A DNA stretch of 64,000 nt, from the NCBI GenBank assembly GCA_964234715.1, contig OZ174276.1. One strand, written 5' to 3'. Numbering within the stretch: the stretch's first letter is position 1; each line of letters begins with the position of its first letter. Positions 8,470 through 64,000 of this stretch are shown here, piece by piece. The notes beneath the pieces are model-generated. The model made no database searches and was not told the origin of the DNA. It worked only from the letters and a program-made list of their open reading frames with translations. The position numbers and the translations under genes are program-made. Source of the stretch: Podarcis melisellensis (lineage: Eukaryota).

Positions 8470-8859
8470 CAGTGCTTTTTTTACACAGGGGTACACATGC
8501 CCCTAAACACTTTGTGAATCTAACAGGAGAAGAAACTAAGTTTCTTCTCTAGCACGGTGAATCTTCAGTTCTGTTGAATCGTCAGTTTCGTTGTTACCAC
8601 CTCCGATGGCGGCTTCATTTCCTTTCCCAGTGATTTTCTTGAGTCAAAATGAGAGCAGTGGCGTAGCGTGGGGGGTGCAGGGGGGCCGGCTGCACCGGCC
8701 GCAACATCTGGGGGTTAGGGGGCGCAAATCCATGGGTTAGGGTGCGCAAATCCATGGGTTAGGGGGCGCAAATTACTTGCCTTGCCCCGGGTGCTGACAA
8801 CCCACGCTACATCACTGAATGAGAGTACGCCTAAACATTTTTAAGAAAAAAAAACACTT
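8470..8859. mobile_element. hAT MITE (outer) interrupted by a second MITE
   Basis: Termini CAGTGCTTTTTTT / AAAAAAAACACTT; TSD ATTGTGTC. Confidence 0.85.
8656..8817. mobile_element. hAT MITE (inner) with GGGTTAGGGGGCGCAAAT repeats
   Basis: TIR CAGTGGCGTAGCGTGGG; TSD AATGAGAG. Confidence 0.9.
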
Positions 8860-60200: not shown

Positions 60201-60744
60201 TGGCTGAATACACAGAATCCCTCACATGTTGAAGCTGCTCCTTGGGTAGATGAAAGGCCTGTACATGTTTCTGGATCTGGTCAGAAACAGGAGCGTTTTT
60301 AGAGGGAGCACGGTGGGGAAGCAGTTTGTGATCTTCCCTGCCCTCAGTACTGGACGTGCCCACAAACGAACTTCTCTTTAACCTGGGAACAAAATTCATC
60401 TCGCGGGAGCTTTGTGGTGAAGGTGAAGCTATAGGTGTAGATGTACGTGATTGTGAAAAGGCGACAGCTAAAAAAGAGGACTCGCTGGCATCAGAGTCCC
60501 GCTGCTTGGGAAGAGGGGGGAAGCCTGAATTACGTCTGGAGTCGAAGGAACTAGGTCCTGAATTAAGAGCGAAAAATGTGTTGGAGGCCGAGCTGGAATC
60601 CAGCGAGGAATTTACCACTAAGGAAAACCTATGACGGTCCTCGGAAGCTGGATTGGGACCTGACATGGAATTTAGCAGAAACGAAACTTTAGAACACAGA
60701 TCGTCATCACTGTCTCTCCGACTGGCTCGGCCCCGGTCAGACAT
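42275..60744 (-). CDS. HK3: Hexokinase 3, spliced CDS, 17 coding exons, two hexokinase halves
   Basis: Exon sizes 163(+468)/149/120/99/100/184/156/234/305/149/120/96/100/184/156/234/124 match the vertebrate HK1-3 layout; C-half motifs intact; N-half degenerate; convergent with UNC5A like mammalian HK3. Confidence 0.92.
42857..43090 (-). CDS. HK3: HK3 exon, 234 nt (231 nt with the alternative acceptor)
   Basis: ..[30 protein letters not shown]; acceptor taag/cag. Confidence 0.93.
43870..44025 (-). CDS. HK3: HK3 exon, 156 nt
   Basis: [26 protein letters not shown]. Confidence 0.96.
44104..44287 (-). CDS. HK3: HK3 exon, 184 nt
   Basis: [29 protein letters not shown]. Confidence 0.96.
44695..44794 (-). 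CDS. HK3: HK3 exon, 100 nt (catalytic Asp)
   Basis: [33 protein letters not shown]. Confidence 0.96.
47060..47420 (+). mobile_element. L2 LINE 3' fragment
   Basis: [22 protein letters not shown], typical of the L2 ORF2 C-terminus. Confidence 0.75.
48639..48734 (-). CDS. HK3: HK3 exon, 96 nt
   Basis: [32 protein letters not shown]. Confidence 0.96.
49417..49536 (-). CDS. HK3: HK3 exon, 120 nt
   Basis: [30 protein letters not shown]. Confidence 0.96.
49717..49865 (-). CDS. HK3: HK3 exon, 149 nt (C-half phosphate-1 motif)
   Basis: [18 protein letters not shown]. Confidence 0.96.
50390..50694 (-). CDS. HK3: HK3 exon, 305 nt (linker between halves)
   Basis: [39 protein letters not shown]. Confidence 0.94.
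51464..51697 (-). CDS. HK3: HK3 exon, 234 nt
   Basis: [35 protein letters not shown]. Confidence 0.93.
51847..51876. repeat. (GT)n microsatellite
   Basis: Direct inspection. Confidence 0.95.
52450..52488. repeat. (TCAT)n microsatellite
   Basis: Direct inspection. Confidence 0.9.
52665..52820 (-). CDS. HK3: HK3 exon, 156 nt
   Basis: [34 protein letters not shown]. Confidence 0.92.
53745..54110 (-). mobile_element. L2 LINE reverse transcriptase fragment
   Basis: [22 protein letters not shown] resembles the DLSAAFDTID motif; frameshifted. Confidence 0.75.
54264..54447 (-). CDS. HK3: HK3 exon, 184 nt
   Basis: [26 protein letters not shown]. Confidence 0.93.
54857..54956 (-). CDS. HK3: HK3 exon, 100 nt
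   Basis: [33 protein letters not shown]. Confidence 0.93.
55067..55165 (-). CDS. HK3: HK3 exon, 99 nt
   Basis: [33 protein letters not shown]; ttag/gtgag boundaries. Confidence 0.9.
55560..56330 (+). mobile_element. L2 LINE ORF2 3' fragment
   Basis: [35 protein letters not shown]; disrupted. Confidence 0.8.
56403..56659. mobile_element. hAT MITE
   Basis: CAGTGCCAGAATTA / TAAATCCGGCCCTG; TSD CCCAAACC. Confidence 0.82.
56928..57047 (-). CDS. HK3: HK3 exon, 120 nt
   Basis: [31 protein letters not shown]. Confidence 0.93.
57224..57266. repeat. (ATT)n microsatellite
   Basis: Direct inspection. Confidence 0.95.
58385..58533 (-). CDS. HK3: HK3 exon, 149 nt
   Basis: [28 protein letters not shown]; ttcag/gta boundaries. 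Confidence 0.92.
58954..59140 (+). mobile_element. tRNA-Ile-headed SINE with CR1-type tail
   Basis: AGCTCAGTTGGTTAGAG..GGTGCTAATAACACCAAGG..GGTTCGATCCC, then the same tail and TTCTATGA-like repeats. Confidence 0.82.
59365..59540 (+). mobile_element. Squamate tRNA-derived SINE (SINE2/Squam2-like)
   Basis: TAGCTTAGTGG..GGTTCAATTCCC..GTAGACAATACTGAGCTAGATGGACCAATG; degenerate relatives near 17730-18070, 24080-24210 and 35655-35785 (-). Confidence 0.7.
60114..60744 (-). CDS. HK3: HK3 first coding exon: 156-aa extension plus canonical 163-nt segment (60276-60114)
   Basis: accATGtct at 60744; ..[25 protein letters not shown]|gtaag; internal ctgaccag acceptor before 60276. The 3' part is secure, the start is less certain. 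Confidence 0.75.
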
Positions 60745-62209
60745 GGTGTCATCGGTCACAAAAAGCCCTCTTCTGTCAAGTCAGCAAAGGGCGGAAAGCG
60801 CGAGGGGGGAGTGGGGGCGAGGCAGGCCAGCATGTGGGGCTGGGAGTTGAGTCCGGCTCAGGGTGGGGCGCAGAGTGAGGCCGAATGTGAGCGGGCCAGT
60901 TTTGAAGCTGCGCGAGCGAGGCATGAACAGACACACGAGGCAGGGTGCAGGAGGGAGAGGTGAAGTAGAAAGAAAGCAGAGTGGGAGGGAGGGAGGGTGG
61001 CAGAGGAGGAAAGGAGAGAGAGAAAGGAGAGGAGGGCTTGGAGCAGGAGGCAGTTGGAAGATTCCTCAAGCGAGAGAGTGGAATGGAAGCGGGGGGGGGG
61101 CGGGGAGTAGAATGTGGGGCCACAGAGTTATAAAAAGGGCAGAGGAGACCATATAATTGTCTGCATAGGCTGTTTCATGGTTCATACTGAAAAGCCGTTT
61201 TTTTAAATAGCCTCTGGAGCTGAGGGCTGGGGAGGAGAGTCCCCTGAGGGGATTTTAACCTTGCTGTGACTAGACCCCCAGCAGTGCCCACCTCCAAATA
61301 AAAGATAGCTGTGGAATTCACACACTTTCTACACTTTCTATCTTGTAGGAAGACGTTTCTTTCTTTCATTCATTTGTTTTCTCCACCATTGAAAAAATAG
61401 CCTTGCCAATGGAAATTCCAATGCGAGTGCAAACTTTTGTCCCAATTGGTTGGTGGGGAAAAGAGGCCTATGACTAGGGACAGGGGAGCAATTTTCAGTT
61501 TGCATTTAAAGCCAGATTTATCAAAGTTGCGCTTTCCAAAGCAATATGAGGACTGAAACATAGCTATCCTTCAAGCTTCACACTCATCTGAATTTTGTGA
61601 TGCAGTTCTCCAGTCAAAAACGTTCACAAAAATGCATATGTTAGGGGAAAGGGTGCATAAAAAGGAATTTATATACAAAAATAACATACAAAAATAGATT
61701 CCATTAGGGGAAAATGCTTGTTAAAATGTGTTCACCAGTCAAAAATGCATATAGAAATGTATTTGTTAGGAGAAATTCGCACTAGTATGCTGAAGAATTT
61801 TCATGAGGGTTTTTCCTTTAAAACAACAACAAAAAAACTTCACAAACTGATGCTGAAATGTGGAGATTGGAGTTTATGATTTGAAAAACAAGAAATAGAG
61901 AGAACCAAAATTGACAGATTCTTCCATTCCAAACTATGTCAGCCTTTCACTGAGGTTCACTTTGGATATCACAGGTTGAGGATCAAGATTGAGACTAAGC
62001 CTGCTTCCAGACTGTCACCATTTTGTTCCAGTGCATTCCAAAACTTTAGGCTTGCAGTATTAAAGCAGATTAAATCAGTGTTTCCCAACCTTTTTTGGGC
62101 AAAGGCACACTTGTTTGATGAAAAAAATATCGAGGCACACCACCATTACAGCCCCGTGACGTCAGTGCGGAGCGTCACTTGAGCTCCTTCTCCTGCTCGT
62201 TCAGGGCCA

Positions 62210-62357
62210 CAGTGGCGTAGCGTGGGTTGTCAGCACCCGGGGCAATGCAAGTAATTTGCGCCCCCTAACCCGTGGATTTGCGCCCCCTAACACTAACCCC
62301 CAGATGTTGCGCCCGGTGTGGCCGGCCCCCCCTGCACCCCCCCACGCTAGGCCACTG
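62210..62357. mobile_element. hAT-type MITE nested in the 62076-63447 element; inverted relative of the 8656-8817 copy
   Basis: TIR CAGTGGCGTAGCGTGGG; internal GCGCCCCCTAAC repeats; no intact TSD. Confidence 0.85.
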
Positions 62358-62731
62358 ATCCATAGCTAAAAGCAGAAGTCGACAAATGTGTCCTGTTTTT
62401 TGCTCTTCAAAATATGGCAACCCGAAGACCCCCAGGGACCGTCCAACCAGCCTAGGAAGTGTGCTCTGGTCGCGGGGGAGGAGACACAAGGCATTGCCAT
62501 CCACACCTGGAATTGAGGAGGAGCTGGAAAGGTCCTTTGGTTTCACACCCAGGACCCATTTTTTCTCTCTTCTTTTGAGAAAGGGGTGGGAAACGGGATT
62601 TGGAGGGCGCATGTGTGCGCGTAGCTGAGCTCCAGTTGCTCTGGGCATTTCTGGACGGCGCCGGTAGCGTCTCTCCTAACCCCTCCCCACCCCGGTCTCC
62701 ACCCCCCCCACGCCCAAAGGCTTCCCCCTAC

Positions 62732-62821
62732 CTGGCCAAAGTTCCACCCGAAGCTGGAGATGCGGTTCGCGCTACCCACGAAGACGACGCCGAACTCGGA
62801 GAGGACGTATTCCTTGCACTC
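62732..62821 (-). pseudogene. Captured transglutaminase (TGM3-like) exon fragment
   Basis: Translates ECKEYVLSEFGVVFVGSANRISSFGWNFGQ and ends at CAG|gtaggg; matches the TGM EYVL..G.I.VGS.N.I...WNFGQ segment and its exon end. Confidence 0.82.
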
Positions 62822-63728
62822 AGTGCAGCGGCGCAGCTAGCCGCTCAGGGGCCCGGGGCGGCGCGCGCGTCCTGCAGCCAGGGGCAAGTGCCATGGGGGC
62901 GAGCCATGGCAGGGCGCGCTGCGTGGAGCCTTGCTGCAGCCTCCCCCTCAGCTGTAGGGAGGCTGAGGCGGTGGGCAGAGGCCAGAGCGGAGCTTGCGGG
63001 CAGTTCGCCCGCAGACGCATGGCTCAGGCACGCTGCAGGCGCCGAGGTGTGGCGCCCAGTGCCCCCCGCCTCGCCTAGCTACCAGTGGCATAGGAAGGGG
63101 TCTGCGGTGGGTGCGGGGCTGAAAGGACATGCAAGGCTCCATGCTGCTGCCCGGACATGCCGGCCTCCTCCTCGTCCGCTGTCTCGCGCTCCTCCCTTTT
63201 GCGCGCGCTGCCCCGCCGCCGCCCCATTGGCCGGGTCCTGTCAGCTGATCCTGTGTTATTTCCTGTGTGTGTGTGTGAGGGGAGAATGGAGAGAGAAACC
63301 TCGGCACCGCCACCGCGGAGCCGCCCCCGGCTCGACGCGGATCCTCGCCGCCGCCGCCCCGCCTCTCGCCCGCCTCCCTCCCACGGCACACCAGGCAAGG
63401 TCTCGCGGCACACTAGTGTGCCGCGGAACACCGGTTGGGAAACACTGGATTAAATAGTTCTGTCACAGACCACTTTTAACTGTTTCCCCTTAGTGCAGCC
63501 CGCTCTACCATTACAGTAGCAACATCCTAAGTGCAGACCTTACTGAGCGTGAAACAGTCTGCTTCAGGAGGCAGTGGGCTTTTCACCACTGGAAGCCTAT
63601 AAGCAGAGTTTCCCATCCCTCAGGTGAAATGCGACTTAGCATCAAGTGGGGAATGTGCTTACTGAATGAGATCTGATTGTGCAACAAGATTTTCACCTCC
63701 TCTCCTCTCTCTGCACACGCCCTAAACT

Positions 63729-63818
63729 CATAGCTGTCAACTTTTCCCTTTTCTTGTGAGGAATCCTATTTGGAATAAGGGAAATGCCCTTTAAAAAGGG
63801 AAAACATTGACAGCTATG
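63729..63818. mobile_element. Small hAT MITE
   Basis: TIR CATAGCTGTCAA; TSD cctaaact/cctaaacc. Confidence 0.82.
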
Positions 63819-64000
63819 CCTAAACCTGCCCTGGGGTGTTCTTCAAATCCACAAGAACAGATTTAGGAGGCATAGGGAGGAGGAATGGGGGGAAGACATG
63901 TTGCACAAGAAGACCTTGTACCAGAGCATGCAACAACTTAGTTGAACGCTGCCCAAAGCAACAAGCCCAAATTTATGGCAAGCTTTGAGAACAATGACAG

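Follow-up and report, generated by a model that had tools for sequence, protein, structure and literature searches.

A hAT-type element without a transposase gene that carries a transglutaminase gene fragment upstream of a wall-lizard hexokinase gene

Results and discussion

Within the window, by which we mean the whole 64-kb stretch of wall-lizard DNA that was analysed, we found a 1.4-kb (1372-bp) hAT-type element without a transposase gene (62076-63447), located upstream of a hexokinase gene. The element is very probably a recent copy of a multicopy Pack-hAT (Pack-TIR) that has the ends of a MITE family and a 612-bp DNA copy of a TGM3-like gene (a transglutaminase of the skin type) as cargo, that was formed by one capture within Podarcis and that was moved in trans. 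Observed directly were its ends, its TSD, the corresponding empty site, the donor gene with its intron, a sequencing depth consistent with many copies and the presence or absence of a nested MITE by which the capture can be dated.

Structure of the element

The element is bounded by a mismatch-free pair of 15-bp TIRs, CAGTGTTTCCCAACC at the left end and its exact reverse complement at the right end, and by an identical 8-bp TSD, GATTAAAT, on either side (Table 1), in line with the preliminary description of this DNA. The two TIRs are the only perfect matches in 64 kb, where 0.3 matches would be expected by chance at up to two mismatches. They start with CAG, as in the hAT superfamily, and five of the 13 GGCACAC motifs of the window lie within 70 bp of the element's two ends, which is supportive of hAT but not defining. 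Because no autonomous hAT partner with the same ends was seen in the 64-kb window, the assignment to hAT is based on the length of the TSD, the form of the TIRs and the subterminal repeats.

Both arms belong to a family with thousands of copies, so that transposon sequence flanks foreign DNA on both sides, and the reads and contigs of other copies stop at 62076 and 63447, which identifies these positions as the exact termini of the family. None of the eight ORFs of the element matched a Pfam family at E<=1, which agrees with the earlier statement that a transposase is absent, and Rfam and tRNA scans of 61-64 kb gave no match. The 285-aa ORF has no exact counterpart among public gene calls; the sole match in a homologue search consisted of 24 residues of translated right arm in a SIX-type gene model of Podarcis muralis, the C-terminus of which is the translated right arm of an element that combines the same arms with other cargo. 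The homologue search with the 78-aa ORF across the exon end and the intron gave no match.

Table 1. Features of the element and its immediate surroundings (positions in the window)
Feature	Position	Strand	Evidence or remark
TSD, left copy, 8-bp GATTAAAT	62068-62075		single copy kept in empty-site contigs
Left arm, very abundant hAT-type MITE family: 15-bp TIR (62076-62090) and two GGCACAC subterminal motifs	62076-62178	+	summed contig depth thousands x single-copy; contigs of other copies diverge after 62178
31-bp linker between generic arm and TGM-derived piece	62179-62209		inferred from loose contig ends at 62178 and end of donor homology at 62210
Older 148-bp MITE, TIR CAGTGGCGTAGCGTGGG, 22-bp units with CCCTAA; came in as part of the TGM intron	62210-62357		same intron position in P. 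muralis and P. lilfordi; depth ~1e5 x single-copy
Inner copy of the nested MITE's own target duplication, CTATGGAT on the minus strand; inherited from the donor intron	62358-62365	-	alignment to donor loci
Unique intron of the TGM3-like donor gene; GT donor at 62731-62730	62366-62731	-	blastn and alignment to L002, L003, L004, L005 and L006
Last 90 bp (30 codons) of TGM3-like exon; first 30 bp of the exon absent	62732-62821	-	exon = residues 138-177 of XP_077785633.1
GC-rich (70%) interior, collinear with the TGM piece in family contigs	62822-63313		X5 contig spanning 62792-63171 at ~17x single-copy depth
Right arm, same MITE family as left arm: 15-bp TIR (63433-63447) and three GGCACAC motifs	63314-63447	-	depth thousands x single-copy
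TSD, right copy, GATTAAAT	63448-63455		sequence and empty-site contigs

A fragment of a TGM3-like gene as cargo

The preliminary description had read the minus strand of 62821-62732 as the 30-residue end of a transglutaminase (TGM) exon, followed by a GT donor and intron, and this translation was reproduced. Compared with solved structures the peptide matches residues 151-179 of human TGM3 (E 6.5e-7), and 28 of 28 residues are identical to the TGM E-like protein XP_077785633.1 (TGM3-like) of P. muralis, in line with the TGM3-like identity that had been proposed. The TGM-derived cargo measures 612 bp (62210-62821) and includes the final 90 bp of the exon together with 490 bp of intron. It is collinear with positions 4587-4008 of the locus of the P. 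muralis TGM3-like gene (L002), from which it differs by 22 mismatches and 6 gaps; in P. lilfordi, P. raffonei, Zootoca and Lacerta the orthologous loci are collinear with it as well. The predicted donor locus, with identity in both the exon and the downstream intron, is thereby found in P. muralis and the orthologues. The unique part of the intron aligned to that of P. muralis with 346 matches, 14 mismatches and 10 gap columns, and the exon part is identical at 88 of 90 positions. Compared with the donor genes of three Podarcis species the cargo has diverged by 3.4-4.4% (~4% substitutions); a tree of cargo and donors is star-like and uninformative, with zero sites that group the cargo with any single species.

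The splice donor and the intron flank are real, as the 490 bp past the exon end align with the intron of the donor gene, and because this intron was kept collinear with the donor gene the cargo is a DNA-level copy and not a retrocopy, as had been suggested. Retroposition, in which a processed or partly processed TGM transcript would have been copied into the element, has no point in its favour, is refuted by the 490 bp of collinear intron (with a MITE and its TSD included) and left no poly-A; its probability is practically nil.

The description of the cargo as an exon end with its donor and intron was correct in these parts and can now be extended, since the cargo includes an older nested MITE and is joined by a GC-rich interior of ~490 bp (62822-63313). 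For this interior we obtained no match in ~100 kb of five to six TGM loci and no Pfam match. Single-copy contigs of two species (X5 and X8, see below) match 62825-62931 alone (~92%), and 63140-63313 is common to a more abundant subfamily.

There is no evidence for a function of the cargo. Only 30 codons are present of a functional transglutaminase with its Cys-His-Asp (GQCWVF) core and its N, core and C domains, the reading frame has no in-frame start codon, and an in-frame stop lies 5 codons upstream of the exon fragment. The RNA reads of organism D, which come from one library of an animal without this insertion and thus relate to other copies only, showed zero depth over 62444-62791 and a depth of ~1 over 62792-62878. 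The same data bear on the possibility that the element acts as a mobile alternative first exon, in which minus-strand CpG-island-like DNA with an exon end and a splice donor could be joined by splicing to the hexokinase gene downstream. The orientation is indeed suitable, with the TGM donor and the hexokinase exon (60.1-60.3 kb) both on the minus strand and the GC-rich part upstream of the donor, and by eye a CCAAT box with a GC box after it is recognisable on the minus strand near 63215-63230. Nevertheless, given the near-absence of RNA from other copies in that one library, the lacking start codon and the upstream stop, we consider such a role very improbable.

Genomic setting, empty site and copy number

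The window contains exons for a UNC5-type UPA domain on the plus strand (37.4-38.5 kb) and, on the minus strand, an exon for the N-terminal part of a hexokinase (~60.1-60.3 kb); the element lies ~1.8 kb upstream of this hexokinase (HK3-like) coding exon. The window contains no N and extends 545 bp to the right of the element. A tblastn search of the 64 kb with a 530-aa gecko TGM matched the cargo piece alone, and the GQCWVF active-site motif is absent from the window, in agreement with the earlier expectation that no TGM gene resides at the UNC5A-HK3 locus.

A clear empty site was found in the contigs of X3, another sample that shares the organism label of the best holders of the sequence, and in those of two other species, X5 and X8. 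In all three, position 62067 is followed by 63448 with a single GATTAAAT, the 8 letters of which fit both sides, so that 1380 bp (1372 + 8) are skipped; the contigs have single-copy depth, are unbranched and contain neither the TIRs nor the fragment. The search for an empty site in related lizards that had been proposed was thus successful. These sites also decide against the reading that the fragment is what is left of a TGM gene that resided at the UNC5A-HK3 locus, or was brought there by segmental duplication, and that the inverted repeats around it are due to chance. Nothing beyond the fragment itself speaks for such a relic, with the right side visible for 545 bp only, and it is refuted by three genomes that have the site with a single GATTAAAT and without the fragment, by the window, which holds neither another TGM exon nor the active-site motif, and by the ends of the element, which coincide exactly with the termini of a family of thousands of members; we regard it as extremely improbable. 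A segmental duplication as the origin of the cargo at this place is excluded by the TSD and the empty site.

Despite the empty site, the cargo is abundant in the same samples. Over 62349-63171, the depth of the cargo contigs was 97-235 in X3 (single-copy depth 8.3), 178-231 in X5 (single-copy 13.8) and 406-713 in X8 (single-copy 26.6), i.e. ~12-28 times the single-copy value in all three species. As estimated from contig k-mer depth, which is not itself a copy number, this suggests that each genome holds roughly 12-28 members of the family. The element at 62076-63447 differs from the multicopy cargo contigs by ~1.0-1.3%. Since the element is missing from the same site in an animal with the same label (X3), it must have moved recently, and the copy at 62076-63447 is a recent and probably polymorphic insertion.

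The preliminary description had taken the undepleted CpG as a sign of a recent event. The CpG is indeed undepleted (observed/expected 0.74 in the element versus 0.17-0.42 in the flanks) and the insertion is recent, but the capture is not and took place elsewhere, given the divergence from the donor genes and the multicopy state of the cargo in three species.

The nested MITE and the capture of the fragment

In the TGM intron of P. muralis and P. lilfordi we found the 148-bp MITE flanked by its TSD, CTATGGAT, and in that of P. raffonei and Zootoca a clean empty site without it. The inner terminus of the nested MITE in the element carries the same private G substitution as that of the donors. 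Since the MITE is present in the intron of the former two and not of the latter two, the capture took place in the genus Podarcis, at a time when the TGM intron already contained the resident MITE. A chimaeric origin of the nested MITE, hinted at by a length difference of 28 bp between the element and the donors, was considered and dropped; the 22-bp units vary in number (1, 2 or 3) among copies.

The homology to the TGM gene breaks off, precisely to the base, where the 148-bp MITE has its outer tip, and the donor's second copy of the TSD was left behind. This boundary is what would be expected of cleavage at a transposon end, and it could point to transduction (end bypass), in which the outer tip of the resident MITE and a cryptic end in the exon mobilised the MITE, the intron and 90 bp of exon into a MITE of another family that was amplified afterwards. 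A precedent has been described for P elements, and such cases are under-counted because parents with a TE within 100 bp were dropped by the published survey pipeline (PMC8277862). As in P-element transduction, host DNA beside a transposon end was mobilised and a transposon terminus forms one boundary of the capture; in contrast to it, the present mobile ends come from a different MITE family than the capture boundary, and the expected TSD around the unit is missing. A unit that was inserted in this way should carry a flanking 8-bp duplication, and none was found around the 612-bp TGM piece inside the element: the 8 bp to the left of 62210 (CAGGGCCA) have no counterpart to the right of 62821 (5/8 at the best offset). 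Moreover, the end on the exon side is unlike a hAT terminus. Because of the missing duplication, plain transduction plus insertion was ranked below template switching and is unlikely; for template switching as such, the missing duplication is neither for nor against.

The route that we favour is template switching (of the gap-filling or FoSTeST type) while a parent element was being repaired or replicated, in which homology to the abundant MITE may have served as a guide, since the TGM homology stops exactly at the tip of that MITE. The capture itself very probably took place once, in an ancestor within Podarcis that already had the resident MITE in its intron. A hAT transposase would subsequently have moved the chimaeric element in trans to roughly 12-28 places per genome. 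The insertion near the hexokinase exon, with duplication of GATTAAAT, was recent.

Relation to known systems

The capture of gene fragments by cut-and-paste transposons is well known in plants, and the formation of Pack elements has so far been studied mainly in plants and flies. Elements of the kind described here are known already and are rare in vertebrates. A survey of 100 animal genomes reported 370 Pack-TIRs, 208 of which were hAT, and only four captured fragments that had been amplified to multicopy; segmental duplications were excluded in this survey by the demand that no TE be present within 100 bp of the parental copy (PMC8277862). The element found here fails that filter, as its parental segment ends at a MITE, yet this is a filter of the pipeline and not a defining property. 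In the open-access literature that was searched we found no description of a Pack-type hAT in Podarcis, lizards or squamates, and within this scope the earlier suggestion of an undescribed family in lizards stands.

The element most resembles Pack-hAT-N8_XT of Xenopus tropicalis (Tan et al. 2021, PMC8277862), which is likewise a non-autonomous hAT with TIRs and TSDs that has spread a host gene segment of a few hundred bp to several loci, with the parent gene elsewhere and intact. Pack-hAT-N8_XT has three copies with a 291-bp 5'UTR piece, whereas the depth measured here would correspond to 12-28 copies in all three species and the 612-bp cargo has an exon end, a splice donor and intron. Other differences are that the insertion described here is absent in an animal with the same label and that a TIR element marks one of the breakpoints in the parent gene, a configuration that was filtered out by the survey.

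Pack-MULEs of rice and other plants also contain gene fragments, often GC-rich and often mosaic, between transposon ends and were amplified by transposition. They are however Mutator elements with 9-bp TSDs and long TIRs (here hAT, with an 8-bp TSD and 15-bp TIRs), and elements of their type number thousands in plants, compared to four multicopy families in 100 animal genomes. A third related case is Ssk-FB4 of Drosophila melanogaster, a polymorphic multicopy Pack-TIR with a parent locus without the carrier transposon, for which template switching followed by transposition was proposed (FoSTeST model, PMC8277862). Ssk-FB4 contains a nearly complete coding gene with protein evidence, whereas the present cargo comprises 30 codons, lacks a start and showed no expression in one RNA library.

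Implications

The element provides a clean vertebrate example of a Pack-TIR, for which the donor gene, the two breakpoints and a precise empty site that shows recent mobility are in hand, together with a relative date and, for several species, a depth-based copy number in the tens. That one breakpoint falls exactly on the tip of another transposon offers a concrete clue to the way in which a capture starts, and cases of this class are removed by the published pipeline. The finding is also a warning for annotation: in lacertid genomes, a match that resembles TGM or another gene can be the cargo of a transposon, and the transposon arm described here has already been included in a public gene model of P. 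muralis.

A wider possibility, which we consider quite unlikely at present, is that a hAT system active in Podarcis today repeatedly assembles and amplifies mobile cassettes from CpG-island DNA, exon ends and splice donors of the host, with the TGM3 family being one of many, in which capture may be seeded by the termini of resident MITEs or by homology to them, and polymorphic insertions, like the one near the hexokinase gene, may provide new first exons or promoters. If true, this would make Podarcis a natural vertebrate model for the formation of Pack elements.

The element and its termini

The 1372-bp element at 62076-63447 is bounded by CAGTGTTTCCCAACC at its start and by the exact reverse complement at its end. 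No other perfect match to CAGTGTTTCCCAACC occurs in the 64 kb window, where 0.3 matches would be expected by chance with up to two mismatches allowed. The target site duplication (TSD) GATTAAAT adjoins it on each side (62068-62075 and 63448-63455), and none of its ORFs matched any Pfam family, indicating that it carries no transposase. The terminal inverted repeats (TIRs), identical 8-bp TSD and missing transposase of the preliminary description were thus reproduced by sequence matching and the Pfam search. Of the 13 GGCACAC motifs in the window, five are found no more than 70 bp from an end of the element, and the subterminal repeats of hAT elements are likewise positioned close to the ends. 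Where other copies of the arms are represented by contigs or RNA reads, the similarity stops precisely at 62076 and 63447, so these positions are true termini of the family. The element is non-autonomous and has the hallmarks of hAT transposons (Table). Its GC content is 64% overall and 70% in the right half, and its CpG observed/expected ratio is 0.74 versus 0.17-0.42 in the flanks.

Table. Parts of the element and a related repeat copy (window positions)
Feature	Position	Strand	Remarks
Left arm	62076-62178		summed depth thousands x single-copy
Linker, 31 bp	62179-62209		
Nested MITE, complete, 148 bp	62210-62357		TIR CAGTGGCGTAGCGTGGG; 22-bp units containing CCCTAA
TGM3-like exon end	62732-62821	minus	last 90 bp of a 120-bp exon (residues 138-177); 88/90 identical to P. 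muralis
GC-rich interior	62822-63313		
Right arm	63314-63447		summed depth thousands x single-copy
Second copy of the nested-MITE family	8656-8817		TIR CAGTGGCGTAGCGTGGG; own 8-bp TSD CTCTCATT

Origin of the cargo

Translation of minus-strand 62821-62732 gave exactly the peptide of the preliminary description, which had placed it closest to TGM3. The best match among solved structures was human TGM3 (residues 151-179, E 6.5e-7), with factor XIII and TGM2 behind. Searched against 1.84 billion representative proteins, the fragment gave 10 matches, namely exon-sized ORFs, which likewise run GQ/V into intron, and one gecko TGM. Among the lizard TGM3-like proteins gathered from this gecko protein, Podarcis muralis XP_077785633.1 (annotated as 'protein-glutamine gamma-glutamyltransferase E-like') is identical to the fragment at 28/28 residues (150-177), confirming the TGM3-like identity.

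An alignment of 614 columns pairs the P. muralis locus of this gene (L002) with 62210-62821; it contains 22 mismatches and 6 gaps. The element matches the GT donor and then 490 bp of the next intron of the donor gene, in line with the earlier expectation of exon plus downstream intron identity at a donor locus. Since exon end, GT donor and intron are retained and collinear with the donor gene, retroposition is ruled out, and capture at the DNA level, as proposed before, is upheld. The first 30 bp of the donor exon are missing and a stop codon lies 5 codons upstream of the fragment, so the TGM piece is by itself unable to encode anything. No other TGM exon or active-site motif was found in the 64 kb window, which agrees with the expectation that no TGM gene resides there.

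The GC-rich interior showed no match to the TGM loci that we compared. Its segment 62825-62931, the sole part matched by single-copy contigs in two species (~92%), begins to match at most 4 bp from the TGM breakpoint, which suggests that the cargo is a mosaic with a second captured piece. The segment 63140-63313 is common to a more abundant subfamily, frequently with an 81-bp deletion.

An old capture

The P. muralis TGM locus was compared with its orthologues in P. raffonei, P. lilfordi, Lacerta agilis and Zootoca vivipara. P. muralis and P. lilfordi carry the nested MITE (summed contig depth of its family ~1e5 x single-copy) in their TGM intron with the duplication CTATGGAT on both sides, and P. 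raffonei and Zootoca have a clean empty site with a single CTATGGAT. The element holds the MITE together with the inner CTATGGAT (62358-62365) and the private substitution of the donors in the inner terminus of the MITE, so that the MITE was copied out of the TGM intron and is not a later insertion. Since it came along from the intron, the capture is younger than the MITE insertion and falls within Podarcis.

The unique part of the cargo differs by 3.4-4.4% from the genes of P. raffonei, P. lilfordi and P. muralis, which differ among themselves by 2.1-2.9%, and no sites group it with one of these three species. By these values the capture is roughly as old as the split of the three species and not recent. 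The recent event put forward in the preliminary description therefore holds for the insertion at 62076-63447, as empty sites show, and not for the capture.

MITE copies differ in the number of CCCTAA 22-bp units: there are three in the 8656-8817 copy, two in the element and a single unit in the copies of the TGM intron. The orthologous L. agilis locus (L005) has an insertion of ~500 bp in the intron, between 4524 and 5032, relative to Podarcis and Zootoca, at the spot matching window 62582-62588.

Recent insertion of a member of a probable multicopy family

For 61400-64000 we aligned contigs assembled from three DNA runs as well as the unassembled reads of an RNA run. The DNA run X3 shares its organism label with the samples that match best and stems from a different sample and study; X5 is from organism B and X8 from organism D. 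In each of them one unbranched contig at single-copy depth joins 62067 to 63448, omitting 1380 bp (1372 + 8, the 8 letters matching both sides). The empty site is exact, with one GATTAAAT kept, and the flanks diverge from the window by ~0.6% (X3), ~1.4% (X5) and ~3.0% (X8). The insertion, and hence the mobility of the element, is recent.

Contigs over 62338-63171 had depths of 97-235 in X3 (single-copy 8.3), 178-231 in X5 (13.8) and 406-713 in X8 (26.6), a cargo depth of ~12-28 x single-copy, which is an estimate, as summed depth is not a copy number, and which is consistent with many copies and thus with a multicopy family. One X5 contig covers 62792-63171 unbroken, so the joining of TGM piece and GC-rich interior is a family-wide property. 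The element differs from family contigs by 1.0-1.3%; several differences, 62488 and 62774 among them, are private to the window copy, the family retaining the donor base there.

One X3 contig ends at 62658 and others begin at 62660 and 62792; their depths (216, 97 and 235) would fit a lack of about 62659-62791 (most of the TGM exon piece and the donor) in about half of the copies of organism A, the joint itself being absent from the alignments shown. In X8 a joint from 63447 to 62076 places two arm-family copies head-to-tail with 8 letters (ATCTAGGG) between them; this is either two elements with one common target duplication or a tandem insertion.

Mechanism of capture

Movement of the element would depend on hAT transposase provided in trans. 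The parent TGM gene is free of the carrier element in five species, so the capture fits template switching of the gap filling or FoSTeST type, models described for animal Pack-TIRs (PMC8277862). Unusually, the TGM homology breaks off with single-base precision at the outer end of the nested MITE and leaves out the second TSD copy of the donor. The parent element may already have contained this very abundant MITE, in which case the template switch took place within it during repair synthesis. Alternatively, transposase may have cleaved the MITE end in the TGM intron, and the freed end was then joined into the carrier (transduction or end bypass). If a transduced unit had simply been inserted, an 8-bp duplication should flank 62210-62821; none is present, and we therefore prefer the template switch within the MITE or a one-ended variant of the transduction.

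Genomic context and expression

UNC5-type UPA-domain exons lie on the plus strand at 37.4-38.5 kb and the start of a hexokinase domain on the minus strand at ~60.1-60.3 kb. The element lies ~1.8 kb upstream of the hexokinase exon, with the TGM piece on the same strand. The region 60700-61150, just upstream (minus strand) of the hexokinase N-terminal exon, has a GC content of up to 62%, a GC skew of up to +0.58 and an AT skew, and is probably the CpG island or first exon of the hexokinase gene. The left flank (61574-61900) contains several moderately repeated pieces (tens to hundreds x single-copy) with many short 'skip' joints in the three DNA runs; these look like old decayed repeats.

The RNA run came from organism D, an animal without this insertion; across its 1.9 billion letters, depth was zero over 62444-62791, and this one library gave no sign of cargo expression. 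As 98% of the RNA reads on the arms and nested MITE continue into unlike sequence, they come from other copies within other transcripts. The top RNA depth within 61400-64000 (up to 583, with strong one-strand bias) was on a MITE-like repeat of ~90 bp at 63729-63818 (inverted ends CATAGCTGTCAA...TTGACAGCTATG), the summed depth of which is ~1e4 x single-copy in three species.

Comparison with known Pack-TIRs

Among the 370 Pack-TIRs that a survey detected in 100 animal genomes, 208 were hAT elements and just 4 were multicopy (3 in frog and 1 in alligator); the survey pipeline dropped cases with a TE at most 100 bp from the parental copy (PMC8277862). The parental copy here has a TE within 100 bp and belongs to the dropped class. 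Searches of the open literature turned up no report of elements of this kind from Podarcis or from other squamates.

Another gene may have been captured between the same ends. The public gene model P0093 (UniRef, P. muralis, 380 aa) has a SIX1-type SD domain, and residues 342-365 of the model correspond to the translation of the family's right arm (21/24 identical). The reading frame probably passes from a captured SIX fragment into the transposon end, and because the model ends in the translated right arm it lends partial independent support to the same transposon ends carrying different cargo.

Taken together, the original observation is confirmed and its interpretation supported with corrections: the capture is old, the insertion at this site is recent, and the family is probably multicopy. 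As a vertebrate case the element is well resolved, and one of its breakpoints offers a clue to the mechanism; its significance would be greater only if many such families prove to exist across the genome or if the nearby hexokinase gene proves to be affected.
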